Positions 20,262 through 63,600 are shown, counted from the first letter of the stretch. The stretch: DNA of 64,000 bases from Takakia lepidozioides (GCA_030704615.1 CM060733.1:23560001-23624000); one strand, 5' to 3'. Notes: generated by a model not told the origin, from the sequence alone. Translations and numbers: made by a program.

Positions 20262-21937
20262 TTACTCACAGGCAAAGTCGGAGTCCAGCTCCTTGTCGGA
20301 AGTCTCCCCTGTATCAATATCACCGAGAAGGGGCTTTGGAAGGATTTGAGAAGTGTGTCCACCCAAACCCATCAGGAGGTTCTTGTAAATCTCGGCATCC
20401 CCTTCAATCCCAAAGAGATGTTGCGCACTGGCCTTGCAAGCGTAGTACAAAGCATCTGCAGTGGAACAGAATGAAGAAAACAGACATTGAAGACACATTT
20501 GGAACGGTGTGAAGTTATGAAAGTGCAAGCTCAAACAAAAACCTCATGAAATGTGAATGTTGAAGAGACGAACCTGTGCCCTTTGACAAATCCAGAACTC
20601 TGGCGTCTGTGTAGGTGCAACACTCCACAATTGTTTGAATGAAAGCCGAGCTCTTCTCCCTCGCCCCTCTCCAAGGAACCCCATTCCCCCTTCGCAAGCA
20701 CACGTTGCTATCGACGTAGTTGTGGTGCATGTCATCCGTGGGAGGATCTGTCCTCTCGTCTATGAACTTGCCCCCATGAGTGATGGCGAACTCCGGAATG
20801 ATGGCCGGAGTCGTAGGTGGATGCACTCGGACGAGACAAACAGTTTCAAACAAACGAGTCTGCGAACAGGACATGCACGAGGAACTAAGAAGCTCCAAAG
20901 CCAGGCCCCAACATATGAGTTTGAGCGACCTATACAACTCCATCCGAGAACCAGCAAGAAGAGGAACAAGAAGGCAAATTTACCATCTCTCCCGGACGAT
21001 CCCCCTTCGTCAGGTACATGTTGTTCACACAATTCCATGTCTTCACGACCCTCATACCGGAGGCTTTCAAATAGCTGGCAAGTGCACGGCGACAGTGAAG
21101 GTCGATGGACTGGATGAGCACCAAAACACCTGCATCGCACAGATATAAATTGCAAAAGGAGAAAACCCACCGCCAGTAGCGCTCATCAAAAGCATTCCAA
21201 CCCGGACAAGCACCCGATGGAGGGACATCCGGAACTGGCAACCCATCAGGGATGTCCAAGATGATGAGTTCGGCTGCATATGGCTTCTCCTTCCCGTTCA
21301 CCCAGGATTTGGTCATTTTAGCCTGCAAACAAGAATACAATGGAATGCTCAAGAGGATTGAAATGATCTATGCCCACAACAGACAAGAAGCAAAGACAAC
21401 ACGCACCGTGCCGAGGAACTCCACAATCCTCTCCCACACTGGTGATGGCTTGCCCTTGTAATCAGATTTCCTGGACTCCATCATGGCAAGGAACCCGATG
21501 TTGGCCATCTCCAACCTGGTAGGGCGAATGACCCTCATGGGATGTTCCACTGCATGGTACGGGTCCTTGGGATCAACCACCCCCTTGTTCTTTCTCCCGG
21601 ATCCCCTACCATGCGGTGGAGTCTGCTGGACATGCACCACAGGGCCAGGTTCTGCAACACTTCCCTGCCCACCTGCCTGCCCTTGTGCCCCCTTCCCCCT
21701 ACCCCTTCCTTTCCCCACACCACCAGCAACATCTTTTCCCTTTGCCTTTCTACCTCTACACGGGGTATCCTGAGCGGGAGGCTCCTTCTCTGCAAGAGTC
21801 CTCAAATTTCTATCATGAATGTCGAGGTCGGCTGCTGCGGCGGTGGCTGCTATACGCTCATTCTCTCTCCTCAAAGACACCTCCAGAGCTGGGGTCTCAG
21901 AAGGAGGGCAATCCAAATACCATGGGAGTTTTGACAA
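20262..21937 (-). CDS. Intron-containing beta-class DNA amino-methyltransferase-like gene of element A (5'-truncated relative to element B; may be a pseudogene)
   Basis: ELIILDIPDG at the motif IV position. EKSSAFIQTIVECCTYTDARVLDLSKGT splices (GT 20573, AG ending 20456) to DALYYACKASAQHLFGIEGD. PWYLD and intron positions are shared with the element B gene. Confidence 0.65.
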
Positions 21938-30701: not shown

Positions 30702-32003
30702 TTGTTTGTGGTGGATCCTCTTTCGAGAATTACGGGCTATCAGTTCGGGGATTCCGTTGTGAATCGCAATTTTTGGTCAGTGGAGGAAAACATGTCGAGG
30801 GAGCAAGATAGACTCGCTCGATTTCATTCCAATGCAGGTAGTCTTCCACTGACTACCACTACAGACGACAATGGGTTTGCAATTGTTCATGAGGATGAGC
30901 TGGTTACAGTGTTCCCGTTGGAATTGGGTTCTCTGCTTGTTCAAAAAGAGGTGTATGACGAGGATGAGAATTTGGATTCTGGGCACTTGGAGAAACCATT
31001 GGTTGGTGAGTGTGGAAGGAAGTGGAGAGTCCTTCCAGGCACATCCTGTGTCCTTGGAAAAGAGAGAAGACAATCAGCAGGATCAGTAGTTACCCCTGGC
31101 ACTGAAGCATCAGTCGTGCAGCAGAAGGGCACAGTTCATGTGAAACAAGAGGTGAGCACATCCACTACATTCGTGACTCTTTCAGACTCGTCCTCGGAGG
31201 ATGTTTCTGAGATTCCTCCGCCAGTGCAGACTCCCATCTTGGATGATGACGAATTGCAGGAGATAACGAGTGTCATTCCGAAATTGAAAGCCCTCGCAGG
31301 GGTGCCTGGGTGCAAGAGCGAGCTGCGTTTTGTTGATTGGGAGTCCCTTCGTGTGCAGCGGTTCAATACGTGCCAACAAAGTTTGATGGGACATCTTGTT
31401 TGAGCTCAACCCTCCCACGTCTTCCAGTGGACTGGCTAGGCTTCTGCAAGGCATGGACAAGAAACATGACGGACACCCTTGGTGCATGACAAAAACATCG
31501 AACATCCACAACGACATTGGATTGAAATTTCGAAGGTCGGTTTGCGTTGGGCATTGCAAGTGCGTGAATATTTCTTGCCCTCGGCTGAGAAACAGCGCTA
31601 ATCGGCTGACGACGAATCGGGTGCAGATCACAAATGCAAGATGGAATCGGCTAGAATTTTGCAGGCTCGGGTGACTCGTATCACCGAAGTCCTTGCCCCG
31701 GGGTATGGACGGATTTACACAGTGCTGTCTATTGGCTCAATTCTTCATGGCAAAGAATATCAGGTTACCGTGGGGAATTTCCCTAAATGCACTTGTCCGG
31801 ATTTTGTAACGATGCGTGAGGGCGCTCTCGGCATGAGAGGGAAGTGGATCCTCTGCAAGCATCAATATTACATATACCTTGTAATTATGTGTTGCGACGG
31901 TAAGAGAGACCAATTCATTCACCAAGCCACACTAGGCTACGGAGAAGTCATCACCCTTCTGCAGCGGGACACCTCACGTGGGGCTCCGCCAAATTCTCTT
32001 TGA
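30702..32003 (+). pseudogene. Internally deleted MULE-like transposase of element A
   Basis: MDKKHDGHPWCMTKTS...CVGHCKC aligns with MDRKHDGHPWCVTKTS...CAGKLRC of element B, then jumps straight to a SWIM finger (PKCTCPDF...CKH). The DDE core is missing and there are frameshifts. Confidence 0.8.
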
Positions 32004-35859: not shown

Positions 35860-38800
35860 TTTAGAGGGAGTTGGTAGCCAAGGCAGCTGTGATGGATGAG
35901 GTTGGGGATTCTTCTCGGGATGAGGAGGTTCTCAATGATGAGATGATCAGGCAGGATGAGGCCTTGTCATTGACTGAGCAGGAAGGGAGTACTGCTCAAG
36001 AGGTTGCAGCATAGCAACCACGGGACGCGTCCTCTACCTCTAAGCCCACTGGACTTAAGGTTGCAGTTACGGAGGACAATTGGGAGCCTGACATTGGACC
36101 CATTGTCACCAGAGGAGAGAGACGACGTATACGGCGGTTCCTGAGGGCTTACAGGAATTGCTTTGCCTTTAGTTTGAAGGACTTGGGAGCACTGAAGGGT
36201 CAAGAGATCCGTATTGAGTTGGCCACTGACACGCCAATCTTTCGGAGACCCTATAGATACAGTGACATGGAGAGGTCTTTGATTCAGATGAGGACTCAAG
36301 ATCTCTGGGAGGCAGGTTTGGTGGAGCTCACTGGTGGAGAGTATGCTTCAGCCACAGTGATGCCAGCTAAGAAGGATGTCTATGGCAATTGGACGGAGAG
36401 ACGTATGTGCGGTGATTACCGGCCTGTAAATCGTCAGACCAAGTCCGATAGATATGCCATGCCGACACCAGAGGAGATCTTTGATGCCATTGGGCATTCC
36501 AAGGTCTTTAGCACGTTGGATTTAGGATCCGGATATCACCAGTTGCCGATCAAGGAGGCGGATAAGCAAAAGACGGCATTCTGGGGGATCAATGAGCACG
36601 GGAAGGATTGCCTATACCAGTGGCGGTTCTTACCATTTGGGCTTAAAAACGCTCCCGCTGAGTTTCAAAGAGTCATGGACAGGATTCTAGCAGGGGTGGA
36701 GTTTGCTCGGTGCTACATAGATGACATCATCATCTTTAGTGCTACGGTGGAGGAGCATGAGAGACACCTTCAGGGGGTATTTGAGCGCCTGAGGGCGCAC
36801 GGATTGAAGTTACATCTAGGAAAGTGCAAATTTTTCAACAACCAGATTGGAGATCTGGGTCACATGATATATCCTGGAGGATAGGGGGTACAGCAGACTA
36901 AGGTAGAGTCCATTGCACAGGTTCCACGCCCCACGGATGTGAGCCGAGTTTGAGCTTTCACGGGGTTAGCAAACTATTACAGACGGTTTGTTAAGGGATT
37001 TAGTGCCATTGCAAAGGCTCTAACCAAGCTGACCAAGGTGGACCAGGAATGGCAGTGGGAAGATGAGCAAGAACAAGCTTTTTCAAGAGCTCAAGGCGAG
37101 GTTGACCTCGACGCCCATCTTGAGACGACCTATCAGGGGGCGTCCTTTTCAGCTGCATACAGATTGGAGCATGCTGGGGCTTGGAGCGGTGCTCACACAG
37201 GTGGATGATGAGGGAAGAGAGTTCGTAGTGGCTTATGCTAGCCGCTCGAACAATGCTACAGAGTCTAAGTATAGCTCATATGAGGGAGAATGCTTAGCTG
37301 CAGTCTGGGCCGTGGCACACTTCAGGTGCTATCTATAGGGCAATCTCTTCACCCTTGTCACGGATCACCAACCACTCAAGTGGTTGATGGAGTCAGACAA
37401 GCTTACGGGGAAGCTTGCACGGTGGGCACTCATCCTTCAAGAGTATGACTTTCAGGTGGTGCATTGACCGGGTTTGGTCAATCGCAATGCAGATGGGTTG
37501 AGTCGCAATCCATGCACGAGCCAACAGGATGACACTGGAGCTCGGTGGCATGGTGAGACGGACGAGGAGATGGTGCCCGGATGACATGCATCTGCATTTC
37601 TGTGTATCTTGGCAGCGGAAGGCCAGGTTGGACCTGCAACAGGGATGACTGTAGATCAAGTGTCTGAGGACCCTGAGGCCAGCAATGAGCAAGGTGGCGC
37701 CAAAGATATACATGAGGATTCAGTTGTGTTGGACTACCTCCGCACTGGAGACACTGCAGCCACTGTGACTGCTAAGGAGAGGGATCGGATCCTACAACGA
37801 GCCAAGAGGTTCAAGTGGGAGGGGACACACCTGCTCCGAGTGTGGGAGGATGGTCGAGTGAGGATTGTGCCTCACCCAACACAGCGGGCACGGTTAGTGC
37901 GGCATGCCCATGAGGAGTTGGGGCATTTTGGGGTGCGACGCACTCATAGTCTACTGCAGGGGCAGTATTGGTGGCGTGGTATGCACACAGAGGTGCAACA
38001 ATTTGTGGCTAGGTGCATGGTGTGTGACAGGGTGCGTGCTTCATTCAACGCCCCTACTCCACAATTGCACCCTCTTCCGATCATGGGATTGGGCTAGAGG
38101 TGGAGTCTTGACTTCGCAGGGCTGTTGCCACTGACCATGCGCCACAACAAGTACGTGTTGGTGATGGTGGAGAACTTCTCCAAGTGGATTGAATTGGTTC
38201 CATTGCCTGATAAGGCTAGTGAGGGAGCTGCATATGCATTCTTGGATTGTGTGCTTAGCCGATTCGGTGCTCCAGCTGAGGTACTCACGGACCAAGGGAG
38301 AGAGTTCTTGGGGGAGTTTCAGGCTTTGTGTGACAAGGCTTTGATAGACCACCGCACCACTTCTCGGGATTATCCTGAAGCCGATGGCTTGGCAAAGAGA
38401 GTTGTTCAGACAGTAAAGCGGGGTTTGCGCAAGTATGGCTTGCAGAAGGGACACCTAGGAGATTGGGACCTTCAGTTACCCTGGTTAGCCATGGGCTACA
38501 GGTTCAGCAAGCAAGCATCACTTGCCTCCTTCTCACCATACTTTCTTCTCTTTGGCCGAGAGCCGGATTTACCTACATCCATTCGCAGAGAAGCTGCTAC
38601 AGTTCTTAACCTTGACGATCCGGATGTGTGGGCACGTGCATGTGAGCAGCGTGCAGAGTTGTTCAAGAAAGTCATGCCAATGGCTTTTGAGAACCTTGCC
38701 ATTGCACAACACCGTGATACGTTGAGGTATGCTACCATACGTGGTGGGGGCTATCGTCCTGGGGTTCGGAGATTCAACCCTGGTGACTACGTCTATTTGC

Positions 38801-39150
38801 AGCAGACTGCTCCTACGACCTTGGATGCGACTGCAGGACGTGTTATTTTGAGGGTTCGAGAGGTCTTGCCCTCAGGCGTCTTGGTCTTGGACGGTCGGGA
38901 TGGCATAACTTGGAAGGACCATGTGCGTAATTGTGCGCCATGTCACCTTCCGAATGTCGATGGCAGGATAGACCCAAACTTGGCAGTGGTATCTGCAGGT
39001 TTGAGGTGCATGTTGTGTGGGTCTGCTAGAGGGGCAGCCACCATGCTGGTGTGTGATCGATGCTCTAGAGGTTGGCATATGGGATGCTTGACTCCACCTC
39101 TTGAGATGGTTCCGGATGGGGATTGGTTATGTCCACATTGCATTGGATAG
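35860..39150 (+). mobile_element. Ty3/gypsy pol remnant (RT-RNaseH-integrase) with C-terminal PHD finger
   Basis: RT: RMCGDYRPVN, LPFGLKNAPAEFQR, YIDD. RNase H: LHTDWS. Integrase: HEELGH..CMVC, LTDQGREF. C4HC3 PHD at 39007-39141. Several in-frame stops. Confidence 0.93.
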
Positions 39151-39410
39151 TGGGAGTGGATACAACCATGGAAGGCTAACAAGCAACGCAAGGCCCAACT
39201 ACTAGGAGACTTTGAACACACGAGGTCCTGGCTCAAGTTCACAGATTGCAAGACGGCGACTAACGATGGGGCTACTCTTGTACCCGGCCTCTTGGTCTAT
39301 AGGGTTTGAGTGCAATAGGGACAGTGATAGAGGACTTAGTACGGTTGTGGCTATTACATCGTGTAGCTATCTGGAGTTAGAGGGACCTATCCACCAGCTA
39401 GGGGGGCGAT

Positions 39411-39941
39411 TGTGGCAGACTACTTTATTGTGCATATATGTGTGGTGTGGTTTGGACAGCGATGTAGTTGTGTAGCGATATGTATGCGCACGACACCTGT
39501 CAAGTTAAATAAGCACAGTGTGAAAACAACTAGAATAAAGCTAGTTATTTGTATTTAACACTTGGATTTAGGTCAAGTGTTAAATCAAGTGTCAAATGTA
39601 GTTTGACACCTGAACCGCCTTATCTTCACGAGAGCGGCAGTCGCGTAGCTCATCTCTCTCGAGTTGAGCCTGCGCGACCGAGCTCCTTCATGCGTTTAGA
39701 ACTGAGTGTGCTCATGATGGTAGTGTAGGTTGTTGTGGGGTGGAGTCCCCACAGCTTGGGGTGCCCCTGGCTCGACTTCTGTTTTAACGAGTGATGCTGT
39801 TGGATTCATGTTGTTTCTTGTGTGAACAGTGTGTTTTCTAGCTTTCTTATCATTGTGGCAGACTACTTTATTGTGCATATATGTGTGGTGTGGTTTGGAC
39901 AACGATGTAGTTGTGTAGCGATATGTATGCGCACGACACCT
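39411..39941 (+). repeat. Direct repeat of about 88 bp (39411-39498 and 39854-39941) at the gypsy/copia junction, probably LTR-derived
   Basis: TGTGGCAGACTACTTTATTG...GCACGACACCT occurs twice. The first copy follows a purine-rich AGGGGGG tract. Confidence 0.7.
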
Positions 39942-39960
39942 CCTTCAGGTTCAGGGAACC

Positions 39961-41360
39961 ATGGATCTAACTTTAACATGTTAGATGCTAGAGTGGAGGA
40001 TAGATTTGATGGGACTAATTATCATACTTGGAAATTTAGAATGGATATGATCCTCCTAGACAAGGACTTGTGGTCAGTAGTTGATGGCACTTTAGTGAGG
40101 CCAACCACAACCAATGGTCAACCTGCATGGGACAGGAAAGATCAAAGGGCTAGAACAAGTCTTATAACAAGTCTCAGAGATAATCAAATGCACTTAGTAA
40201 CTAGTGCTTCCATTGCAATGGCGATCTGGGACAAGTTGGCCACAATATTTGAGACTAAAGATGTCACGTCAAATGTGTTTGCCACTACTCGTTTTTATAG
40301 TCTAAAAATGAGTGAAATAGAGAATGTAGAGTTACACTTGAGTTCCTTCAATGTCTTGAGAAGACAACCAGAAGCAGTAGGAACTAAGGTTTCAGATGAA
40401 CATGCAGCAGTAGTGTTGCTTGGGTCATTACCAGAGTCTTATGACGGGTTTGTAGTGTCACTAACAGGGCAAAACAACCTATCGGTGGATAATGTCATAG
40501 GGCTATTACTTAAAGAGGAAATAAGAAGAAAATGCCAAACATCTACAGGAGTAGATAAGGCATTATTCTCTGGAAAGTTTGGTAATAAGAAGAAGTCTTG
40601 GAAGTCCCCTCAAAAACAAGAGGTAGGAGAATCTAGTGAGTCTGGATATAAGAAGAAGTCTAAAATAAAATGCTTTTACTGTAAGCAACCTGGTCATATG
40701 ATCAAAGACAGCAGAAAACGAATGGCGGAGGAAAAGCAAAATGATGAAGTAGATCATACTCTTGAAGATGAAGAGGAGGATGAAGCTAGTGATGAACAAG
40801 TAAGTCCACTTCTGTGAAGGTCACGAAGGGAGAGAAAAGTTCCTGAGAGGCTTATCATGTCGATGACAGCTGTTGAAGCCGTGAGAGGAGAAATCCCATT
40901 GACAGAACCTGCTACCTACGAAGAAGCAATGACAGCCCCTGATAAGGTTAAGTGGGAGTAGGCAATAAACTCTGAATTCAATTCGCTAATATAGAATCAA
41001 ACATGGTCACTTACTGACCTACCCCTAGGACGTAAAGTTGTTGGGTGCAAATGGATCTTTAAGATCAAGCTCAAGTCCGACGGGAGTGTTGACAGGTATA
41101 AAGTGCGGCTGGTTGCTAAGGGTTTCTCACAGGTACAAGGTGTTGACTACAACGACACTTTTTCACCTGTTGTAAAAATCACTTCAATAAGAGTATTAAT
41201 GGCATTGGCAGCCGAGAATGATTTTGATGTCCATCAAATGGATGTCAAAACAACGTTTCTCAATGGCTACCTACAAGAGACCATTTACATGGATCAGCCT
41301 CAAGGTTTTATCAAACCAGAGACCAGAGACAAAGTATGTAAGTTACATAAGACGCTATAA
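39961..41360 (+). mobile_element. Ty1/copia remnant: gag fused by deletion to a partial RT
   Basis: Gag: FDGTNYHTWKFRM, LLGSLPESY, degenerate knuckle CFYCKQPGHMIKDS. RT: CKWIFK, RLVAKGFSQ, HQMDVKTTFLNG. Protease and integrase are absent; stops are present. Confidence 0.92.
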
Positions 41361-51488: not shown

Positions 51489-52004
51489 AATGGAGCATCT
51501 GGGTCACACGTACCCACCGACGGAGGTGGAACGTGTTCATCACGCCAGCGGTGGATGAACCCATACATCTTTCTCATCAACAAGTTATAGTTTGAGATCT
51601 GCCACCGAAGTCCATCCCCCCGGATGGAAATTCGGCGCCGCATTTACATCGAAGAGGGGATGGACTTCGTCGTGTCCAGTGGCTATCGGCCCACCTGGCA
51701 GTGAATGCCCATAGTTTGCGCAGCAGGGTAGGAAACTGAAACGGCTACATTCATGCAGCAGCCAATCTTCATCGGTCCAGGATCCTGTACGGGGGAAATT
51801 TAAATGTGCCCTGGAGTGTGCCCTGGAATGTACCTCACTTCTGTATGACTGTGTTTCATTGTGTTGAATAACTCTCGGATTTGGCCCACTGTTTACAATT
51901 TGATGTCTCATTTCTACAATTTGTCTGTCCGGTTGAATAAAGCAGAGTAACCGGTATGTGAGTCATGTGTCAAGAATATACCAGAGTAACGCCATGTCGG
52001 ACAT

Positions 52005-52851
52005 TAAAATGCGGCACCGCATTTCCATGTCGGCATGGAAATGTGGCGCCGCATTTCCATGTCGGCTTGTCGGCTTGGAAATGCGCCGCATTTCCATGTG
52101 CATCGAAATGCGGCACAGCATTTCCATGTCGGACATCGAAATGCGGCACCGCATTTCCATGTCGGACATCGAAATTCGGCACCGCATTTCCATGTCGGAC
52201 ATCGAAATGCGGCACCGCATTTCCATGTCCGAAGAAAATGCGGTGCATCATTTCCGTCCAGGTACACGAAATACCAACACGGGTCTATAAATTGATCAGA
52301 AAACGAGGTTGGCATTGCAAATGCGGCGACGCATTTCCAGCTTGGCAATGGAAACTTCTTTTTGGACAAGGGAATGCGGTGCCGCATTTCCGTCCAACAC
52401 TTCGAAAAGTGCACCTATTTCCGACCAGCGCGATGGAATGCGTTACCGCATTTCCGAGAGAGGGTCTGCAAATGGACAAATTGCGATGTCCGTTCTGGAA
52501 ATGCGGCGCCGCATTTCCATGTCCGTCATCGACTTTTTTTTACAATGGAATGCGGTGCCAATTTTTGCTGATGGGTCTGCAGTTCGAACAACGACCATCC
52601 CCAATATGGAAATGCGGCACCGCATTTTCAATCCCGCCATGTCGGCCTCCTTGTTCGACCTCCTTGTTCGACCTCTGTAAGCGTGGTGGCATCCATGCAA
52701 TGAGCGGGAGAGGCCAAAACTGGCGTGTGGACAAAGGAAATTTTGGAAATGCGGCACCGCATTCCCAATTCAGATTACTTTTTACTATGCCAACATTGAA
52801 ATGGAAAAATTAGTCCCTCCCCTGTTTTGGAAATGCGGTGCCGCATTTCCA
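52005..52851. repeat. Palindrome cluster B1: GAAATGCGGCACCGCATTTCC copies (33-bp period first, then irregular spacing)
   Basis: The unit ATGCGGCACCGCATTTCCATGTCGGACATCGAA is tandem at about 52108-52230, with further dispersed copies up to 52851. Confidence 0.92.
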
Positions 52852-53038
52852 AAAGAGGTTCTTAGAGTTGCCAAAATTTTGGAAATGCCCTGACCCATTT
52901 CTGATTTTGGGAGCGTCCTGGTTTGGGCGATTGTGTGGCTGGAATGCACACTGGAGAGGGGTCACGAATGTCGGGCAGAATTTTCTTTATATACTCTGGA
53001 AGAGAATTTACATTTACAGAGACTTCATTAAAATTCTA

Positions 53039-56000
53039 TTAATCTTGAAAATCATCCGAATCCTCATCCTGTTCTAGACTGTCCTGCTCCTCCTCCACCC
53101 CCTCAGTGCCTCTCTCATCTCCAGCGGACTGCTCGTTGGCCAGGCTTTCGAAAATCCCATCTTCCCCTTGCGGAACTGTCCATCTCACCTCCGTTGGGTC
53201 GTCTTCCTCCCTGTCTGCGTCGCTCTCATCCGCTGAATCACATATGTACTTTCGTACCCGTCTACCTGTCTGAGCTGCTGCCAACTCTTTCCTTATCCTT
53301 CTGTCCTCCCTAGCCCTCTCCAAAATCTGCTCTACTTTACTGGGATTCTCACTTCTTCTAATCGCTGTATTTGCGAGTTTAGCTGCATAACTAGGAAGGG
53401 AGTAGTCCCTCACCGGGCTCGTCATGAAGTCGGCCCTCGCAAAGAACGGGACATTCTTCCTGGCAGGAAGTGTAGGCCCTACATGTTTCGACCCGGACCC
53501 TGCAATCCTGCACATGACAATCATCAACGAGACTAATGAGAACCACAGTCGGGAAATTCCTTTGACATAAATGACCCAGAAGGCTTTGCAAACTTACAAT
53601 GTTTGCACTCACTCGTATTCCGGGTTCTCCTCTGCATCAATGTCCACTGTGTCTTCCTCGGACTCCGACGAATCCGAGGAGACTTCCGCTCTGTCGGGAG
53701 CCTTCACATTCCGTTGCAGCCCCTCCAGATGGGATCCCCACACGGATGAATCCTCCTCGTAGGCAAAGAGGTGCCGGTCGGAAAACCGCCCAGCCCACAT
53801 TGAGGCACCTGTTACAATGCCATCCACACATTACCACATGGCGCTTCAGATGTTGCGAACTACATCCTAACGAGAATTTGCAGAACAGCAGAGATCAAGA
53901 TTCTGCATACCTGTCCCACAGATGAGGTCCAGCACTGTGCCCTCCACGTCTGTGCATGTCTCCATAATTGTCTGAATGAAGGCAGGGCTCCGAGTCCGTG
54001 AGTACCGCAGGGGTTCCGTTGAAGTGAGGCTATGAGGGAGAAGTTCCTTGGGAACGTTGTTGAACAGAACGTCGTAATCGAGTGGGTCGCAGTTCGGGTC
54101 AACCTTTCCTCCCTCCTTCCGGAAAGCAAAGGTGGAGTTTTCCTTCACAAAGCAGTATGCATCGAACTGCTTCGTCTGCATACACAGGGGGAAAACGATT
54201 AGAAACCGAATGCGGCACCGCATTTGAAAGCACCCAAGCAAATGAATGGACGAGTGCCAGTGTCGTAATCACCTTCTTCCCTTCCGACCGAAGGCCCAGT
54301 GTGTTGATGCACGTCCACTTCTTTTTCAGAATCGGGACGGCGCTCTTGCGGGTCCACTTCGCAATTCCTGTCTGAGTGTTTTTTCCTCTGCTCGCCAGGA
54401 CAACCACACAGCCTCTGTCGTCCAACACCATGCGGGCAAGCCCGAATCCTTTCTTCCAAAAGTCCTCCGAGTACCTGTTCCAAGATGGCAAAGCTTGCAG
54501 TCCTTCCACAGGCTCTCCGTCCGGAATATCCAAGATGATCATATCGCAAGACCACTCGGTGGCATTTCCGCCCCTCCTACAATCCTTGTCTGCACACACC
54601 CTCTCAAAGAACGAGACCATATTCTGAAATCCTGGGGTGTCGGAAGGCTCTTCGGCAGTCGCCTTCTTCAGTGCTCTGCCCTTCAGACCCTCCATGGTCT
54701 TCATGTATGCCAACTTGGCTGCCCGTCCATCCAAAGCCGCCAAGAAACTCTCATTTACACACTGGACTACAGTTTCGGGAGCCACTTTCGGCCTCTTCAT
54801 TTCCACCGGCTCGAAAGGGTGCCCCCCTGGGGGGTTGAAGAGTGCCTTCTTTGCCGAGCCAGTTCTCGTGCCTCTCGTGACAACGGTGGGCACAGGGGAG
54901 GCAGCCTGCGTTTGGGGGGGTGGGCTGGTTGCAAAGTCTCCATCGGAGTCCTCTTCCTCACCCTCTTCCTGAACAGGCTGTTTCTGCTTCTTCGTTTTGG
55001 CGGGTGTCACAACAGCTGCTCCTTGCTGGCGAGTCCTCTTCTTCGACCCCTTCTGTTGGGCCTGCACAGCTGCATCCACCGTCTTTTGTGCCATCTCAGC
55101 TGCCTTTCTGGATTCTTCCAGAGCAGCAGATTCCTTTGCCGACTTTGGCCCAGCAGGGACACGTCTTTCCTTTCTCTTCTCTTCTGCCAAGGCGTGCAGA
55201 TCTTTCTCAGACTCGTCAACAATACCGCCAGACATGTCCAGGTACCACGGGCATCCAACGAGATGCGCGGGATGCCATTGTTTCTGCATCTCGGGTGTGT
55301 AGACACAGCTTGGGCCCGCCACGGTCCAAGCCATGAAGAACGGGGGCTCTTGAGCCAGGGCCCCTGTCTGAAGGAGCACGTATTTCATATACCTGCAAGG
55401 CAGTCAGCATGCGTGAGCAAAAGTTGAGACCAACCTACTGGCAGAGTGCCACCGAAAACATAAAATGCGAATGCGGTGCCGCATTTCCGAGACAAACCTC
55501 GTAACCAGGCTTCGCATACAAGGGCAGCTGTGCTTCACCTGTAAACAATTCGCATTGCAGCTTTCCCCGCTCCCTCCTGATGTGTAAACTCCACGCTCCT
55601 TCTTGCTGTCTGTAGCTCTCTGGCGAAAAGGTTGTCCTTGTACGCACATCTGAAACGTGTCACGTAGTCTTCCAATGTCTGTGTTCCATCCCATTTGACG
55701 TACAAGCCGAACGAATTTGTGTGCATTACGACTTGCTCCTTCGCATTCGACATTACCTGCGATTCCCAAATGCATTGTCACGTAGCAGTTCAGGGAATTC
55801 ATGTCAGAAAAGCAAATCTGGGGAAGTACCTTGAATTACCTGGAACCACCAAGTCATACGGTTGAGCCACACATCCACTGCAGGGTCGGAAACTTCCAGT
55901 GGAAAAGACCACATTGTCCTTATGCTCTCGGATGCATTCCAGATCGACAGCCACCGTGTCTGCCATTTCCGATCCAATGTCAGTGGCTGGAAGAGAGTGG

Positions 56001-58162
56001 CTATTGCTAGGAAGGAAATTCAGTGCATTGAAACCTCACCTTCTCTTTCGCCTCCACACATGCCGTTGAGAGGTGATGCAGTTTCTCCAATTGCATGGTC
56101 GGCTGCATGGCCCGAGAATAGTGTTTTGCAATCTCGGGGATGAAGTCCTTTCCAAGTGCCGGATCTGCAATTGCCACCAGCTTCACAAGCTTTGACTTGT
56201 ATTTGGTTCTGGACTTGACACCGGCTTCCTTCAAGTGCTCAGTCAATGACTGCAACGTTTTGACCTGCCCCTCACTTTCCATGAAGAAGCGTTTGGCATG
56301 GGCCAAATCCAGCTTGATGTTTGACTGCCAACAAAAACATGCAGAAGCGTTACATTCGATTCATGTGGAAACATTACTGGAAATTGGGGAAGGATGAGCA
56401 GAGGGAAATTGGAGCACGACTTACTTCGTATATCACCTCCACCATTCCATCCATAGTGAGACGATACCATGTCCGGTCTGTTTTTGCAACGGCTTTCTGA
56501 ATGAGCTCGGCTCCAGCATTTCCGCAAACATCTGCGGATCAGTAAGACCAGTTTTCCTCACCCTGTACAGCATATGTGCCATGTGGGTATGCACGTACGC
56601 ATTCTCAGTGACCCTGCAAGGCACACTCTCCAGTTCAGTACACGGAAGCACGGAATCAAACCAGAATGGAAACCGAAATGCGGCACCGCATTTCGAACGT
56701 GCTAGGGAGGGTATGAGTATCTTACGAGTTGAGGTCCGCCATGGCATTCTTGAGGAGGGAGGAGTCTGCCGCCTTCACCTTGAGGATGACACACTCCACC
56801 ATGTAATGCCAGCCAATGTGCTTGGCATGGTTCTGCTTGATGTACTCCCACCAGGCGAGAAGTCGGTGATTCCCGTCCCACACAAAGAACATTTTTCCCG
56901 ACATATGGCCGAAGTCGGGATCACCCTTCAGCGTCGCCTCGAATTCGTGGTTGCGAGTGTGCCAGTGGGTATCCCACGTTGACAATTCATCGGCAGTGGG
57001 TCCACGGGTTTCGCCGTCCTCATTCTCTATGGAAACGTAAAACGCTGCCGATCCCAGACGGTACCCTTCTCGAAATGCGAACTTGAGCTTATCCACATCT
57101 CCGGGAAGGGCCTGCCTGACGATGGGAAGGGAGACCATGCGACAGAGTGGGATTCGAAGAGTCCGCTGGAATACCCTGCTGCCCAGAACTCTGCCAATGC
57201 TACTGTGTGTCTCCTCCAACATTTTATCCGCTGCACTTTTGAAATCCTCCGGAGACATGTCTGTAGGTGCCGGTAGTGGCTGAGCAGCTGGAGCATCCTC
57301 AACTGGAGCTGCACTCTGGGGCCTGTGTGCGGGCAATTCTGCCATTGCAGAGGCCTCCTCCGGGCCTGCTAGCTCATCGGTGGTGAGGTCTGCCTGCGAA
57401 CGTTCAGCGGCAGCACCCTCCTCCGGTACCAAATCGAGATCAACGGTCGATCCCATTGCCTTCGCTGCAGCAGAGTCGGCCCCAACATCTGCAGGCGGGA
57501 AATCCTCCAGGAACTGAGCTTCAGCTCGTGGAAGCGGTTTTGCGGGAGATTGTTCGCCCGTCGCCCTGATTGCCTTCTGCTTCCTCATCCTTGCAGGTGA
57601 AGGTGTCTGCTGCAATTGAATCTGTCTTCTACCCTGCTGCTTCATTCGCGTTGGGGGGGGTGAATCGGCCTGAGCCGGTTCAGAAGCCAGTAGAGGGACG
57701 GGCTGCTTCTTCTTCGACTTTGCTGGAGAAGGGCCCGACCCCTGCTGGCGATTCTCCATGATCGAAGAACGCGAGTCGATCTCTGAGACTTTGAACTTGC
57801 CCTTCGAAGACGCGTCTTTGAATCGCAGAGGGCTAGGCCCGGCAGGAGTACCCGCGCTCGGGGATCGGGTGGGTGTACGTGCTGCAGCTAGCTCCTCGGA
57901 CTCTTCCTGCGGCTCTTCGGATTCCTGCGATCCCTCCAGCACGTCCACCTTTCCTGTTAGGCATGCAAACATGTTCTGCATTCAAGTCTCCTAGCATTCA
58001 GTCTAAGAATTACAGAAGCAAAATGGGGGGTTCGGTGCTCGATCAGCTGCGCGCAGCCCGATCGCATGGAGCTCTCACTGGTGGCTGGGTTGCCTGAGTG
58101 GCCTGCTGCTCGGAGATGGCAATCTCCTCCTGTAGACGCATCTGCTTCCTCCCCTTCGGCAT
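53039..58162 (-). CDS. Multi-exon gene: ParB/Srx-like N-terminal domain plus beta-class DNA amino-methyltransferase-like C-terminal domain
   Basis: FFVWDGNHRLLAW (about 56863-56880) is the ParB/Srx GxxR motif. DMIILDIPDG lies at 54516-54530. RSPAFIQTIMETCTDVEGTVLDLICGT splices (GT 53910, AG ending 53809) to GASMWAGRFSDRHLFAYEED, which matches the SAM-binding motif I region. Exons are linked by GT-AG introns. The 5' end is uncertain and a 1-nt frameshift near 56510 is possible. Confidence 0.7.
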
Positions 58163-58599
58163 TGGCCTACGTCCGAAGTATAATTTCCGGAGCTTGCGAC
58201 GAGGTCTCCTGTCTGGTGCACGAACTCCCCCCCTCTCAGGTTCGAGCATAAGAAGAACAGAGAGAGGGAAAAGGGGCAAAGAGTGCAGATGGAAAGGGCG
58301 CGAGAGGGGTGACTGAGGAGACACGACAAAAGTAGATGAAACGGCGGTGATGCACCACTTGGGTTCGAAAGGTTGGACGAAAGTGTCTCCTCGTGGAGTT
58401 TGCGTCATTACGAAATTCGAATCGTTGAGGGTACGCCTGCCGTCCGAAAATCAAACATCATTATCCAACGGTCAGGCCGCGCCGCCTCATGCCCCTTCAG
58501 TCAGATAGAGTGCCGACATGTGCAGCAATTCCGTTGCTCCACGTGTTCACATTTCAAGGCATTTCCGTCCCAGCGTCTGATGAGTTGGAGCGAGAATGC

Positions 58600-60195
58600 G
58601 AATGCGGCGCCGCATTTCCGTTAAGTACGATCACTCTGCTACACATCCGTACTTGTTGGAAGAAAATGCGGCACCGCATTTCCGTTCCACCTTCACATAC
58701 CTTAGTTGTTGAACGGAAATACGGTGCCGCATTTCCGTCCCACAGCTCCATGTATGAGATTCAGAAGGGAAATGCGGCGCCGCATTTCCGTTCCCACTTC
58801 ACATACGTTAGTTGATGAATGGAAATGCCGTGCCACATTTCCGTTCGGGAAAGTATAGAGGTCTCACCTGGACAGAAATGCGGTGTCGCATTTCCGGTCT
58901 GGAAAGGTTGAAGGTCTCACATGGATGGAAATGCGGCAACACATTTCCGTAGCACAGCTCCAGGCCGAATATACAAAACGGAAATGCGGCGCCGCATTTC
59001 CGTTCGAGAATGTCGGAAGGTGCGACTCGAACGGAAATGCGGTGCCGCATTTCTGTACCCGTTGCGCACGATTTTCAGTCAGAATGGAAATGCGGTACCG
59101 CATTTCCGTTCTGTAGAGTATTAACGTCTGACGCTGGCGGAAATGCCTTCCCGCATTTTCGTTCCACAGCTCCATGCCTCACATACAAAACGGAAATGCG
59201 GTGCCGCATTTCCGTTTTGGAATGTCGGATGGTGGGACTCCGACGGAAATGCGGTACCGCATTTCAATTCCGATGTTTCAGGATATTTCATCAGAACGGA
59301 AATGCGGTGCCGCATTTCCCTTTTAAATCTAATACATTCCGTTCTGGAATGTTGGGAGGTGCGACTCGGATGGAAATGCGCTGCCGCATTTCAGTTCCGA
59401 TGGTTCACGATTTTCAGTCAGAACGGAAATGCGGTGCCGCATTTCCGTTCTGGAATGATGGTAGGTGCGACTCGGATGGAAATACGGTGCCGCATTTCAG
59501 TTCAGATAGTTCACGATTTTCAGTCAGAACGGAAATGCGGTGCCGCATTTCCGTTCTGGATAGTGTGAATGTCTCAACCGGTCGGAATTGCGCTGTATGA
59601 AGCTGTCGGAATCTTACTCGGCTCCAGGCATCAGATACAAAATGGAAATGCGGCGCCGCATTTCCTTTATGGAATGTCGAAAAGTGCGACTCGGACGGAA
59701 ATGCGGTGCCGCATTTCTGTTCCCGTTGTTCATAATTCTCAATCAGAACGGAAATGCGGTACCGCATTTCCGTTCCACTTCACATACCGTGCTTGTTGAA
59801 TGAAAATGCGGTACCGCATTTCCGTTCTCGAGAGTATGAATGTCTTTTAAGGACGGAAATGTGCTGCAGCATTTCTATCCCTCAGCTCCATGCATCAGAT
59901 ACAAAATGGAAATGCGGCGCCGCATTCCCGTTCTGGAATGTCGAAAAGTGCGACTCGGACGGAAATGCGGTGCCGCATTTCTGTTCCCGTTGTTCATAAA
60001 TCTCAATCAGAACGGAAATGCGGTACCGCATTTCCGTTCCACCTTCACATACCGTGCTTGCTGGATGGAAATGCGTTACCGCATTTCCGTTCTGGAGAGT
60101 ATAAAGGTTTCCCCCGGACGGAAACTCGGTGCCGCATTTCCGTCGCTCTGTTGCATGACCAAGATGCAATACGGAAATGCGGCGCCGTATTTCCG
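58600..60195. repeat. Palindrome array B2: 22-bp GGAAATGCGGTGCCGCATTTCC every 53 bp (about 30 copies) with 31-bp variable spacers
   Basis: Starts at 58981, 59034, 59087, 59140, 59193, 59246, 59299 (53-bp steps), then 59373, 59426, 59479, 59532. Spacers fall into about five recurring classes. Confidence 0.95.
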
Positions 60196-60623
60196 TCCAC
60201 CAGCAATCGACAGAATCACTCGGGACGGGAAATCTGGAACCTCAATGGGTTGCATTGTTCCGAAACAACACAATTGCGGCCAGTCTTGATGAGCACAACT
60301 TGGTTGTCTGACCGTTTTAACCAGCAGTCCTGGCACTTGTCAGTGCGAACGTTCCTGTCTGCACCGAGAATACTGCTGGATCCACCCTCAGGAGAAACTG
60401 TCAGGAGATGTTATTTCGTCGCCGAATCGGCCATCATTGTCCTACTCACTGGCTATGGAATCAAACCTCCCACCTTCATGCATGTAGCTTGAAACAATAC
60501 TTTCCACTTCAATGTGCGACTTCCAATTGTCGATGGACTCCGCAGATCCACTTAGATGGTGCCTGTGAGCCTTGGTCTGTCGCTATACTGAACCTCGCAC
60601 TTGCCAACTCCGTGCGGTGTTCG

Positions 60624-63600
60624 ATGGCTCCGAATTCCTACGCTATAGTTTGCTGTCCTCCGCAACTTGGGAGAGCCTGGATCCCAAACGAGGGAGGACT
60701 TTGCAGAGTGACTGAAACTTACCTTTGTTCCAAATTCAAGCTCAAACCGGGCACAGTTTATTTGGAAGAAGAAAGGAAGGATGTTCCTGGACAGGTTGAC
60801 GAGACCATTGTCGTGCTAGGTAACGACGGAGGTTGCGGAATCGAATGGCACGTTCCCCCGTCAGACACCATCCTGTACCGAGCTGTGGGAATGCCCATTC
60901 CCTTTCCGAATCAGTCGCTGCCCACACCATCCACAAAGGAGTCCGGAAACCGAGAGGCGGCCACTGCCAACAGAGAGGTATGCAACGATAATCATTCCCG
61001 ACCTGGACCGTCAAGACCCTCCATAGCTTCTCGTGTGGACGTATTCGACATTTCCGACGAGGAAGATGATTGCATTGAGGTACCCATGTCCTCCACACGG
61101 TCGTTCAAATCCGGCATGGACGTCTCTGTAGGTGCTACGCATGTGCCCTCGAGCATAACTCCAACCCGGTCCATTGTGCAGCTCCTACGACAACATCACC
61201 TCGATGGTTCTCGCTCCGAGCTGGCTGCTCTCGACTATGCCAAATTCCCAGTCAGAAAGGTAACTTTTCTGCCTCCCGAAGTCGATGGCAATGTCATCTT
61301 CGAGTTTCCACCTGTTTCTTCGTCAAAGAAAGCCTCCGGGATGTTAACAGACATGGATCGAAAGCATGACGGACACCCCTGGTGTGTGACGAAGACCAGT
61401 AGCACGAAAATTGCTGATGGTGTTCGTGTACGATATGTCCTCTGTGCGGGGAAGCTGAGGTGCCTCAATCCCACCTGCTTCCACTTTCTCTCCAAAGGAG
61501 GGCGGAGAAACGAGACGGATTGGACTGGCACAACGCATCATCCATTCATTGTCTCCAGCCAAGCTCCTGCGGGTTCTTTCAAGTGTGCACATTGCAAAGA
61601 ACCACCGACGTGCATGTCCATGTGCAGAGCCAAGCAATATTACGTAATCCATTTGCTCCCGGACTTGACTAGAGCTTGCATACACGTTGGGGTCCACTGC
61701 CACCCCTTGGCGAGAGGCAACATGCGTGAGGCTGTGCAGGAAGCACACGACATCATAAAAGAGGAGGTGAAATTGAGCCCCGGAGCCAGACCAAAGCAGA
61801 TTCAGCTGAAGGCAGCCCACAAGATTGCTCTTGGCAAAATCATGTCTGAAGATGGTTCCGACCGAGAGCCCTTGACCGAAGACGAGATGCGTGACCTCTT
61901 GGAGTCCGTCTCGCACGTTTGTAGTCCGAATGTGCGGAATCACATCGTATCTTGCAAGCAGGAGTTCGGCAGGGGGTCGGACATGTACTCAATCCTGGAG
62001 GTGAAACGAATGACTGGATATGACTACATCCAAGGTAGCAGGTTTCCAGGGCAAGGCAGCGAATCCGATCGTTGTTACATTTTCAAAATGTCGACGTGTG
62101 GGCCTGGGAGTGGAGTCGACTTGGTCACTCGCATGACAACTGGAAACTTGTCGAATGCTTGGGTGATGTTTGATCACATCAAGCGAATTACAAACCATCA
62201 GTGGGTGACTATGGGTGCGCATGTTTATGACTATCACTCCAAGAGGCTCATGACGATTGCAATCTGCGAGATGAAAGGGGAGGACACACAGTCCGAGATG
62301 CATCTGTGGGAGGGCATAAACGAGCAGATGGCAAGGGCGGGATTGCCAGAGCCCAATTTCAGGGGATTCATGGCAGACAACGCTCAGGCCAACTGGGCAG
62401 CGGTGCGGCGTGTGTACGGTGAGGACCCCAATGTTCCAATGGAGGGGAAAGAGAGATCCTGTGGATTCCATTGGATGCAGAGTCTATCCCACTACACTAC
62501 CAAATTTGTTGCTAGCTCATTCCAGGCTGAACACCGTGTCCTTTGTACGGCGTGGAAGGATGCACCCACATTTGATGACGCGGAGGTTAAGTTTGCTATC
62601 ATCGAGGCTTGGTGGAACACGTCAGGTGCAGTGGAGACAACCAATCTGGGAGCATTGCACAGCTGGTTGGGGTGGTGGCATTTTCGGTATCGACAGTTCG
62701 GACAGTACATGCGGGAGGTAGGCTGCTGTCAATTTCGTTCATTTGTCTTTCTGTTACGGACATTTCGATTGGTCCCTCACCGTTGTTTGTGTCCTTCTAG
62801 GAGCGGTGCTTGGATTCCGACACGGACATGCCGAACACGAATATGGCAGAATCGGTCCACTCCTCCTGGCGAGCGTCTTCTGCCGCACATCTGGTGGACG
62901 TAGTGACGGCCACAACGGAGGACATCGACAGAGCAATCATGCAGCAAGCCACGTACTACAAGTTCCTGAGCGGCAAACAATGGGGCTTTGGGCCGGACAG
63001 GGAGGAATTGTTGGTACGAACAGCTTCGAGGTCCAAGAATCCAGTGAAATGGGCGACAGCATTGCGAGAGAAGATCAAAGGGACGCCTCTGCACCGCAGA
63101 GGTGAACACCTAGAGGGGGACGTCCGGACTCGCCCTGTCAGGCGGAGGATTGAAGAGGAACCCGGGTGCGAAGAGGATTCCTGGAGATCCGACAGGAACA
63201 TTCGGACAGCACCTCGAGGTCCCGTCATGTTGCCGCACAATGTGTCTTCCAGCAGTGGAAGCCCAAGAAATTCCAGATCGCCGTCGCCTTCAACCGGGGA
63301 TTTCGTGCAACAAATTCCCACCGCTCCCTTGCCCCACATTCCGCCCGCTGTTATGCAGTATGGCCAAGCCATTGTGGAGACGACTGTGTCTGCCTCACAG
63401 TGGAGAATTGCTCGCACAAAGCCGTCGTTTCGAGGAAGGTGTTCCGCAATTCGTGTGGATACACGGCAACGTTGTTTAGAGATGATAAGGAGGAATCCAG
63501 ATGGGGCTGTCCCTGCTCCTACTTTTACAGGAAGATTTGTCCATGCAAAGTTTGCGGAGGCGACAACCACCCAGTTCTGGTTCTGCAGGCACGACATTAT

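Follow-up and report, generated by a model that had tools for sequence, protein, structure and literature searches.

Gene structure and domain linkage

The window, which is the whole stretch of 64,000 nucleotides from Takakia lepidozioides, carries on its minus strand a gene of nine exons (57981-53042) with eight GT-AG introns of 80-146 nt, as checked by script. The predicted protein is ~1,370 aa. The gene lies head to head with a transposase-like ORF and is bordered by arrays of the palindrome GGAAATGCGGYRCCGCATTTCC. Several features are described by their matches to relatives in other contigs, among them L005, a colinear copy of the whole gene, and P0018, an uninterrupted relative of 596 aa. 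From the gene's upstream side to its downstream side, the features are:

60408-62903, plus strand: transposase-like ORF of 831 aa, divergent from the minus-strand gene; partner gene of the element
58594-60196, no strand: upstream palindrome array between the gene and the transposase-like ORF, ~30 copies, mostly with a 53-bp period
58079-58162, minus strand: candidate 5' exon E0, 28 codons with an ATG at 58162, read from the sequence; no homologue
56726-57981, minus strand: exon 1, an open ORF of 419 aa with homologues P0043 and P0044 at 43-48 % identity, and L005
56425-56613, minus strand: exon 2, where the gene has its sole frame break; matched by tblastx in L005, L002 and L003
56040-56324, minus strand: exon 3, conserved middle region, 43 % identity to L005:4918-5121; open and in phase
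55840-55959, minus strand: exon 4, conserved middle region, 42 % identity to L005:5110-5238
55539-55756, minus strand: exon 5, conserved middle region, 40 % identity to L005:5381-5539
54273-55392, minus strand: exon 6, with 23 HMMER matches; colinear with residues 67-429 of P0018
53911-54175, minus strand: exon 7, aligning to residues 439-523 of P0018 and, at 39 % identity, to L005:7051-7386
53613-53808, minus strand: exon 8, aligning to residues 522-579 of P0018; motif II-like RHLFAYEED at 53776-53750
53042-53507, minus strand: exon 9, an acidic C-terminal tail; open and in phase
54208-56693, no strand: the palindrome as a single copy in each of three introns, namely intron 6 (54208-54225), intron 5 (55469-55486) and intron 1 (56676-56693)
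51628-52901, no strand: downstream array of the same palindrome, partly with a 33-bp period

Exons 3 to 9 read open and in phase over 2670 nt to a TAA stop at 53041-53039, and the junction of exons 1 and 2 is also in phase. Exon 1 begins with ~270 aa of low complexity, followed by a conserved domain of 145 aa (57159-56726) that runs from IPLCRM through MFFVWDGNHRLLAW to DLN and contains DGNHR at 56877-56863. Exon 6 encodes, in order, a conserved FMAW...CPWYLD block, a K/E-rich linker and the first half of a methylase-like domain, with the motif IV equivalent LDIPDG (54533-54516, within a 429-aa ORF), PSWN and VLDDRGCVVVLAS. Exon 7 contains a target-recognition-like stretch and the SAM motif I VLDLICGT-G (53935-53911), and exon 8 ends at a GTGAGT donor, beyond which a TGA (53611-53609) would be read if the intron were left unspliced. 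Thus DGNHR, LDIPDG, VLDLICGT+G and RHLFAYEED all lie on the minus strand where the earlier note had placed them, and its proposal that DGNHR is linked to the downstream motifs through GT-AG exons is borne out by a nine-exon model that is in phase apart from one frame break. A 103-nt GT-AG intron in phase 0 could connect the putative E0 to exon 1 at 57975, so that the gene may have ten exons. Homologues of each exon occur in the same order in other contigs (in L005 exons 3 and 4 have no intron between them), and the exon structure is far beyond chance. By eye, a tail ORF resembling exon 9 is also seen downstream of the gene in L001.

The summed exon length of 4115 nt leaves a remainder of 2 on division by 3, i.e., it is one base short. 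Colinear tblastx matches to L005, L002 and L003, in which both halves of exon 2 are in one frame, locate a single break between 56478 and 56472, adjoining an A5 run at 56485-56481. The frameshift that had been suspected near 56510 is therefore real and single, but its position is 56472-56486, beside the A5 run. Unless the A5 run is misassembled, this one frameshift in exon 2 makes the copy a very young pseudogene. Being one base from intact, it would be a handy template on which to test expression and binding.

The DGNHR domain and the methylase-like domain appear to form one conserved colinear unit, a conclusion supported by L005, by 19 metagenome loci in which the methylase-like domain lies downstream of the DGNHR domain on the same strand, and by the gene model KAI5060227.1 from Adiantum ferns, which spans both parts. 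The earlier note had joined a ParB side and a methyltransferase side in one gene, and as far as the linkage of the two parts is concerned these data agree with it. Two separate genes or transcripts that are merely adjacent inside the element could account for database ORF calls, which are fragments, and for the long charged linker between the halves. Nevertheless, all exons join in phase through GT-AG introns with no stops apart from the one frameshift, conservation extends to the middle exons, L005 and the metagenome loci preserve the order, and the fern model covers both halves, all of which makes separate genes quite improbable. From exon phases and conservation we infer a single transcript.

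A methylase-like domain with an altered catalytic motif

The C-terminal part has, as predicted from models and profiles, a beta-class, circularly permuted amino-methyltransferase fold of the N6_N4_Mtase type. The structural evidence supporting this assignment comes from P0018, which is ~22-25 % identical to the window protein and colinear with exons 6-8. With an AlphaFold model of P0018 (pLDDT 72), Foldseek returned CcrM as the top match (E 4.6e-8), together with M1.HpyAVI, M.BceJIV, MboIIA, PvuII, MTA1 and METTL3, the matches being confined to beta-class amino-methyltransferases, and all ten of the nearest ESM Atlas clusters were 100 % PF01555. A family profile searched against the PDB also gave CcrM as its best match (E 0.0055), aligning DlP-x to DPPY, PkWN to hWD and LdDsGalvil to LkDdGaiwvi. 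At the level of sequence models, P0018 matched Pfam PF01555 weakly (E 4e-4; 20.8 bits, under the 26.7 cut-off) and matched 12 PADLOC type II methyltransferase (MTase_II) models, the best at E 6.6e-6, in the C-terminal stretch aligned with exon 8. The sole matches in a tblastn search of phages were DNA methylases. The window's own exons were unrecognised by Pfam, NCBIfam and PHROGs, and none of them matched PF01555. The amino-methyltransferase match sought in profile and structure searches was thus obtained through the relative P0018 and the family profile, by way of CcrM, PF01555 and PADLOC.

The order of motifs is that of the beta class, with the catalytic-like LDIPDG in exon 6 preceding VLDLICGTG (exons 7/8) and RHLFAYEED (exon 8). 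This order, which had been read from the sequence earlier, holds in the exons, in the alignment with P0018 and in the family profile alignment with CcrM. Motif I is finished only at 53808-53807, after the 102-nt GT-AG intron 7, and the codon of its last glycine is split; completion of the SAM motif by splicing, as originally proposed, is confirmed, and the intron that splits the SAM loop is at a position common to L001 and L005, which represent two other lineages. The pattern hhDhxxGTG followed by hxhhxxE(E/G)D is kept in the window, P0018, L001 and L005, and the motif I stretch of P0018 aligns to the motif I region of DpnA/M1.HpyAVI. SAM-binding motifs I and II therefore seem, as far as sequence can tell, to be retained.

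The classical catalytic tetrapeptide of amino-methyltransferases is (D/N/S)-P-P-(Y/F/W). In the window the tetrapeptide is D-I-P-D, not DPPY, and ~30 family members carry (D/N/Q)-aliphatic-P-x, a single one of them having an aromatic residue. Since the canonical tetrapeptide is replaced family-wide by D-aliphatic-P-x, methyltransferase activity is doubtful; a motif IV that lacks its aromatic residue and its first proline speaks against methyl transfer of the classical kind, and the consistency of the alteration across the family points to changed or lost chemistry. Of the amino-methyltransferase in the earlier note, then, the fold stands and the activity is in doubt. The same non-canonical motif disfavours the suggestion that the gene is a reservoir for plant 4mC enzymes, and the family gives no support to the seeding of such enzymes by genes of this kind.

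The DGNHR domain and the question of ParB

In a conservation profile of 37 family sequences, MFFVWDGNHRLxAW is the most conserved block. A conserved G-x-x-R arginine motif appears to follow a beta strand in this domain, and such a motif alone does not establish membership of the ParB/Srx fold. ParB_N (PF02195) was not matched by the window domain, P0043, P0044 or P0014 in Pfam, NCBIfam, PHROGs or PADLOC, and PDB searches with profiles of 4 and 23 sequences of the domain returned no ParB. Profile-profile comparison by hhalign with a set of 10 Pfam-checked phage ParB_N domains placed its best local match at VWDGNHRLLAW against viaGHxRlxAak, with a probability of 0.2-0.5 %; the score of this match was reached as well in 40/160 and 23/200 column shuffles (25 % and 12 %). 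An AlphaFold model of the domain built from 4 sequences had a pLDDT of 44, too low for a meaningful Foldseek search, and no HTH domain was detected. The ParB part of the original description, which draws solely on the motif, is therefore not established, since every statistical test was at chance level.

If the N-terminal domain is unrelated to ParB, DGNHR would be a chance or convergent feature of a lineage-specific domain, and prokaryotic character would be limited to the methylase-like fold. The uniformly negative profile, profile-profile and structure results are in line with this, as are a 45-residue insert that splits the putative core and our failure to find bacterial or viral relatives. 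Weighing on the other side are five colinear motif correspondences under greedy realignment with ParB_N, a predicted strand-helix order that fits the ParB/Srx fold, and the prior from phage ParB-methyltransferase fusions and algal reports, which favours ParB. We regard an N-terminus unrelated to ParB as possible, at rather less than even odds.

At the opposite pole, the protein could be a true, active ParB-methyltransferase of phage or plasmid type, in which a CTP-dependent ParB clamp loads at the palindromes and the C-terminus writes 6mA/4mC on the element. Its domain order is that of verified phage ParB_N+N6_N4_Mtase fusions, DGNHRLxA resembles phage aGHxRLxAA exactly where hhalign places its best local match, palindrome arrays adjoin the gene, SAM motifs I and II are kept, and algal transposon proteins have been so described. 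However, the ParB similarity at chance level, the family-wide change from DPPY to D-aliphatic-P-x with loss of the aromatic residue, and the lack of a detectable HTH domain make an active enzyme of this type unlikely.

A transposon-borne gene and its known counterparts

The palindrome GGAAATGCGGYRCCGCATTTCC, with the core GCGG-YR-CCGC, is matched 74 times in the window (0 expected), always within 51.6-60.2 kb, and the palindrome array of L005 has the same core. Head-to-head pairing with a transposase-like ORF, as seen in this window, recurs in six further contigs (L002 and five metagenome loci), in agreement with the earlier proposal that the unit travels with a transposon; in L002, the homologous gene has a divergent ORF that matches the 831-aa ORF at 40 % identity across 515 aa. 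Neither ORF has a Pfam or PDB match, even at E 10. Assignment of the 831-aa ORF to the Mutator-like elements (MULE) is not supported by these searches, in which no MULE transposase domain was matched in Pfam or PDB. A D...D...C-x-x-H pattern can be made out by eye in this ORF and is a lead only.

Metagenome contigs contain at least 135 relatives of the gene, mostly decayed, further relatives occur in Adiantum ferns, and a second, diverged fragment of the family lies within the window. Because relatives reach ferns and metagenome contigs and introns are common to lineages, the family is apparently old in non-seed land plants. Horizontal acquisition, as the gene's origin was first explained, is plausible from the bacterial and phage neighbours of the fold, but the searches turned up no relative by sequence in prokaryotes or viruses. 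Domestication as a host gene, in place of a role as transposon cargo, would be consistent with the almost intact window copy and with the annotation of relatives as genes in fern genomes; the many decayed copies, the conserved pairing with a transposase-like ORF, the private repeat arrays flanking the gene and the second family fragment render it most improbable.

Our preferred reading, to which we assign a probability of roughly 0.6, is that a cut-and-paste DNA transposon family of non-seed plants has this locus as its accessory (second) gene, which would encode a palindrome-recognising protein with a methylase-derived domain. The protein would consist of a disordered N-terminus, the 145-aa domain with IPLCRM and MFFVWDGNHRLxAW, the middle region, the charged linker and the methylase-like domain. 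Its N-terminal domain may be a module of very divergent ParB/Srx type, or at least one that binds DNA; by recognising the GCGG-YR-CCGC-cored palindromes of its own element, it would recruit the methylase-like domain to the element's DNA. There the latter might use an unorthodox active site to methylate N6 of adenine or N4 of cytosine; more likely, it would bind SAM and DNA and transfer nothing. Either way the element would be marked or shielded.

A DNA-binding module and a DNA-modifying fold beside arrays of their own binding sites would allow an element to set its own epigenetic marks or to block them. In its strongest form, a divergent ParB-type clamp on phased palindrome arrays would carry a methylase-derived domain with a re-engineered active site and thereby mark or shield the element, giving land-plant transposons a self-recognition module. 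If true, plants would have a counter-silencing or partition-like system encoded by a transposon, and we think this strongest form unlikely to hold in full. We know of no tested precedent for a self-recognition or counter-silencing module in plant transposons, and to our knowledge self-marking was raised briefly for algal transposons and never tested.

Phage and plasmid fusions of ParB_N with N6_N4_Mtase, such as the Wolbachia phage WO methylase (L008:454-1683) and that of Streptococcus phage Javan424 (L009:688-1944), also begin with a small domain bearing G-x-H/x-R-L-x-A, after which comes a beta-class methylase whose motif IV precedes motif I, and their methylase fold neighbours are identical to those of the window family. 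However, they are ~410 aa, intron-less, pass Pfam for both domains and have a canonical motif IV, whereas the window protein is predicted at ~1,370 aa, has long inserts, passes neither Pfam model and carries D-aliphatic-P-x. The eukaryotic 4mC methyltransferases of prokaryotic origin, Marchantia MpDN4MT1a/b (bioRxiv 10.1101/2021.02.12.428880, which does not mention ParB) and bdelloid N4CMT (PMC8885841), likewise represent a prokaryotic-type methylase family in a eukaryote with intron-containing genes. Unlike the window family, they group with prokaryotic N4C methylases, retain the catalytic motifs and are active enzymes of the host.

The closest parallels are described in algal transposons. 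No algal protein was among those of the 23 HMMER matches that had a visible source. Like those accessory genes, the gene in the window is divergent from a transposase-like ORF and has adjacent inverted-repeat arrays. The Plavaka accessory gene PAG3 of the red alga Bostrychia encodes a protein with a ParB-like N-terminus (Petroll et al. 2025, bioRxiv 10.1101/2025.02.11.637652); tandem inverted-repeat arrays adjoin it and its protein is proposed to bind its own transposon. Unlike the window gene, it encodes a 2OG-dependent oxygenase without a methylase fold, and the methylase (PAG2) is a separate gene. In the Ectocarpus transposon Sola1-1_Ec32, the accessory protein is ParB-like and a DNA methyltransferase (Dinatale et al. 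2025, PMC12477816). Its gene is large, spliced and divergent from the transposase of a big DNA transposon, its product by description joins a ParB-like N-terminus to an N4C/N6A-type methylase C-terminus, and the proposed role, binding and modifying the DNA of its own element, is likewise similar. In contrast to this algal element, the window family has a host of non-seed land-plant type with relatives in Adiantum ferns, a different partner transposase that Pfam does not recognise, and a non-canonical catalytic motif. The copy in the window would thus extend the algal-type accessory-gene design to non-seed land plants.

Exon structure and evidence for a single gene

The earlier note had described motifs of both domains lying on GT-AG exons of one strand, an observation that was confirmed by ORF listing, direct reading and script-checked splice junctions. 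A 419-aa open exon on the minus strand (57981-56726) contains FFVWDGNHRLLAW, a 429-aa minus-strand ORF (55388-54099) contains ILDIPDG, PSWN and VLDDRGCVVVLAS, a short minus-strand ORF ends in VLDLICGTG with GTATGC immediately after it, and a further minus-strand ORF starts with ASMWAGRFSDRHLFAYEED. Splice junctions were derived by hand and then checked by script, giving the exons listed below.

Exons of the gene and a candidate 5' exon
58162-58079, minus strand: candidate extra 5' exon, which would join in phase
57981-56726, minus strand: exon 1
56613-56425, minus strand: exon 2
56324-56040, minus strand: exon 3
55959-55840, minus strand: exon 4
55756-55539, minus strand: exon 5
55392-54273, minus strand: exon 6
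54175-53911, minus strand: exon 7
53808-53613, minus strand: exon 8
53507-53042, minus strand: exon 9, followed by TAA

The eight introns, each of them GT-AG, measure 80-146 nt, exons 3 to 9 are open and in phase over 2670 nt, and the junction between exons 1 and 2 is also in phase. These in-phase GT-AG junctions support the proposal that the gene is spliced. The summed coding length of exons 1 to 9 (4115 nt) is a multiple of three minus one base.

Comparison by tblastx of the interval from exon 1 to exon 3 with related contigs revealed, within exon 2, a pair of conserved blocks: TENAYVHTHMAH...KPLQKQ ending at 56478 and TWYRLTMDGMVEVIYE starting at 56472. The two blocks share one frame in three related contigs (L005, L002 and L003) but occupy different frames in the window, indicating a single frame break in the window copy, a few bases from a run of five A (56485-56481). 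Thus, a frameshift previously suspected near 56510 does exist, as judged from the tblastx frame switch, but lies about 30 bases from the suspected place; it may be either a genuine mutation or an assembly error in the homopolymer.

From four lines of sequence comparison, we infer that the DGNHR half and the methylase-like half form one gene. First, exons 1, 3, 4, 5, 6, 7 and 8 have a colinear but degenerate counterpart on one strand of L005, within 3.7 kb. Second, a profile of the methylase-like region gave same-strand matches downstream of the DGNHR exon in 19 metagenome loci. Third, an annotated fern protein of 866 aa (KAI5060227.1) is colinear with exon 1 and both ends of exon 6. Finally, the last glycine of the SAM loop is divided by an intron that occupies an identical position in the window, L005 and another related contig, L001; P0018, an uninterrupted 596-aa relative, continues across it. 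Intron content differs by lineage: P0018, which comes from a Logan contig of SRR18067442 and may be a transcript or an intron-poor genomic copy, is continuous where introns 6 and 7 lie in the window, and in the P0007 cluster, P0007 is continuous across the intron 6 position and ends at the intron following the SAM loop.

Fold and active site of the methylase-like domain

Residues 67-429, 439-523 and 522-579 of P0018 correspond to exons 6, 7 and 8 of the window, respectively. Pfam PF01555 matched P0018 with an E value of 4e-4 (20.8 bits, below the 26.7-bit threshold), and 12 PADLOC type II methylase models matched through the C-terminal motif I region (best E value 6.6e-6). The best PDB match of a 19-sequence family profile was CcrM (E value 0.0055), in an alignment that pairs D-l-P-t with D-P-P-Y, PkWN with hWD and LdDsGalvil with LkDdGaiwvi, together with the motif I strand. 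An AlphaFold model of P0018 residues 315-570 (pLDDT 72, pTM 0.71) retrieved CcrM (4.6e-8), M1.HpyAVI, M.BceJIV, MboIIA, M.PvuII, a type III Mod subunit, MTA1 and METTL3. All 10 of the nearest ESM Atlas clusters, which are bacterial or phage, carry PF01555 in 100 % of their members, and DNA methylases were the only matches in tblastn searches of phages. For the family, the beta-class motif order and the methylase fold are therefore well supported; they extend to the window protein by colinear homology, with P0018 as the relative that provides the structural evidence.

The active site departs from that of canonical amino-methyltransferases, in which the flipped base, together with its amino group, is held by two prolines and an aromatic residue. 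The (D/N/S)PP(Y/F/W) position reads (D/N/Q)-aliphatic-P-x-(G/N) in about 30 family members; a single sequence has an aromatic x, which is otherwise D, E, S, T, G, R or N, and the window tetrapeptide is D-I-P-D. The family keeps the motif I pattern hhDhxxGTG and, in motif II, the acidic position (FAYEED, AALEED, AMEGD). These motifs suggest that the domain probably still binds SAM and that methyl transfer is doubtful or altered, and the conserved D and P of the tetrapeptide argue against a free-drifting relic. Accordingly, of the amino-methyltransferase proposed earlier, the fold stands, while enzymatic activity is doubtful given D-I-P-D in place of (D/N/S)PP(Y/F/W).

The DGNHR domain and the extent of the gene family

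Searches in this analysis used single exons or relatives that are naturally uninterrupted. Scans of the window's individual exons against Pfam, NCBIfam and PHROGs gave no match, the 429-aa exon had none in a word-index protein search, and phmmer with exon 1 against PDB returned only noise; the sole word-index match to P0018 was P0005. With exon 6 as query, an exhaustive HMMER search across 1.84 billion representatives gave 23 matches, among them two proteins of Adiantum capillus-veneris, one of A. nelumboides and numerous fragmentary ORFs in Logan, ENA and JGI assemblies. Two homologues of exon 1 (43-48 % identity) both end where exon 1 ends, so intron 1 is shared. Scanning metagenome contigs with an IPLCRM pattern yielded no confirmed relative. 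Alignment A5 was too variable to yield a scan pattern, and alignment A6 was used instead; in JGI metagenome contigs its MFFVWDG and NHRLxAW blocks recovered at least 135 relatives that tblastn confirmed, and 80 loci among them (L018-L097) were kept. Most of these loci contain stop codons in the DGNHR exon, as expected of decayed transposon copies; stop-free HSPs of this exon occur in only about six (L019, L022, L018, L045, L042 and L037). Within the window itself, a diverged second copy of the methylase-like region (20572-21298, minus strand; 31-35 % identical to exons 6 and 7) lies 33 kb from the gene and adjoins an ORF at 21368-21937 (minus strand).

The most conserved block of the N-terminal domain, MFFVWDGNHRLxAW, resembles the aGHxRLxAA of genuine ParB_N domains. 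As a comparison set, we aligned ten sequences taken from GenBank (alignment A4), which comprise ParB-like nucleases as well as ParB-methylase fusions of phages; Pfam verified two of the fusions as ParB_N plus N6_N4_Mtase. When the plant family (5 and 37 sequences) was compared with this alignment by hhalign, the best local match fell exactly at the MFFVWDGNHRLxAW block, and greedy realignment placed five motifs in colinear order, with an hhalign probability of only 0.2-0.5 %. The hhalign score was matched by 40 of 160 and 23 of 200 column-shuffled controls, and by such controls neither the comparison with single phage ParB-methylase proteins nor that with the ten-sequence alignment exceeded chance. 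PDB profile searches with 4 and 23 sequences found no ParB, sulfiredoxin or related chain, and PADLOC, Pfam and other libraries gave no match for the domain. An AlphaFold model built from a 4-sequence alignment had a pLDDT of 44, too low for its Foldseek matches to be meaningful. The earlier assignment to ParB is thus unproven; motif, domain order and context make it a reasonable guess.

The earlier note had also proposed a horizontal origin. The DGNHR domain had no tblastn match at an E value of 10 among 50,697 phage records, and DGNHR-pattern scans of bacterial and archaeal genomes and viral contigs gave pattern matches, none of which was confirmed as a relative, leaving this origin unsupported. 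Because no prokaryotic sequence relatives were found in these searches, we reject a recent prokaryote-to-plant transfer.

Transposon surroundings and comparison with known systems

Carriage by a transposon is supported by an 831-aa ORF (60408-62903, plus strand) that is 40 % identical over 515 aa to an ORF preceding the homologous L002 gene in divergent orientation, an arrangement that recurs in five further loci. By eye, its sequence looks like a DDE transposase; since no Pfam match at an E value of 10 and no PDB match was obtained, we do not endorse the label "Mutator". Within the set searched, a transposase of this type lies upstream in six loci only (L002 and five metagenome loci); the cargo gene may therefore be carried by more than one transposase. 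Another decayed element of this family is suggested by a fragment at 31390-31605 (plus strand), which matches the transposase-like ORF over its residues 295-366 at 39 % identity. The window also holds retrotransposon remains (36174-40817, plus strand), comprising a reverse transcriptase (36174-36884), an integrase-PHD finger fusion that is worth a look (38125-39150) and a copia-type gag with a zinc knuckle (39822-40817).

The gene is flanked by arrays of the palindrome GGAAATGCGGYRCCGCATTTCC, which occurs 74 times in the window versus 0 expected (both strands, up to 2 mismatches), always between 51.6 and 60.2 kb.

Copies of the palindrome
51.6-52.9 kb: downstream array, partly with a 33-bp period, including within 52001-52254
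54208-54225: single copy in intron 6
55469-55486: single copy in intron 5
56676-56693: single copy in intron 1
58594-60196: upstream array in the stretch separating the gene from the next ORF, mostly with a strict 53-bp period and variable spacers

Three of the eight introns thus hold exactly one copy each and the exons none; the intronic copies may be internal binding sites or traces of intron origin. Long and short ORFs across the arrays (GNAAPHF and MEMRCRIS repeats) are not genes but translation artefacts of the repeat sequence. In L005, seven copies of a different palindrome, ATCCGCGGTGCCGCGGAT, lie upstream of the gene copy (positions 1764-2619); this palindrome has the core GCGGTGCCGC in common with GGAAATGCGGYRCCGCATTTCC, indicating that the core is conserved and the arms are subfamily-specific.

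Overall, the earlier observation is confirmed and its interpretation partly supported. The idea that such genes are a reservoir for plant 4mC enzymes is unsupported; ParB is not reported for the Marchantia 4mC enzymes (bioRxiv 10.1101/2021.02.12.428880). ParB-linked methylases of chlorophytes and phage ParB-terminase loci have been listed (Iyer et al. 2016, PMC4738411), and in red algal Plavaka elements ParB-like PAG3 genes adjoin tandem inverted-repeat arrays (Petroll et al. 2025, bioRxiv 10.1101/2025.02.11.637652). In the Ectocarpus transposon Sola1-1_Ec32, an accessory gene on the strand opposite the transposase encodes a 1104-aa protein with ParB-like and N4C/N6A-type DNA methyltransferase domains (Dinatale et al. 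2025, PMC12477816). We found no description of a transposon gene of this ParB-like/methylase design for land plants in the literature, and the window gene places a recently described, experimentally still-untried algal transposon design in a new host group.
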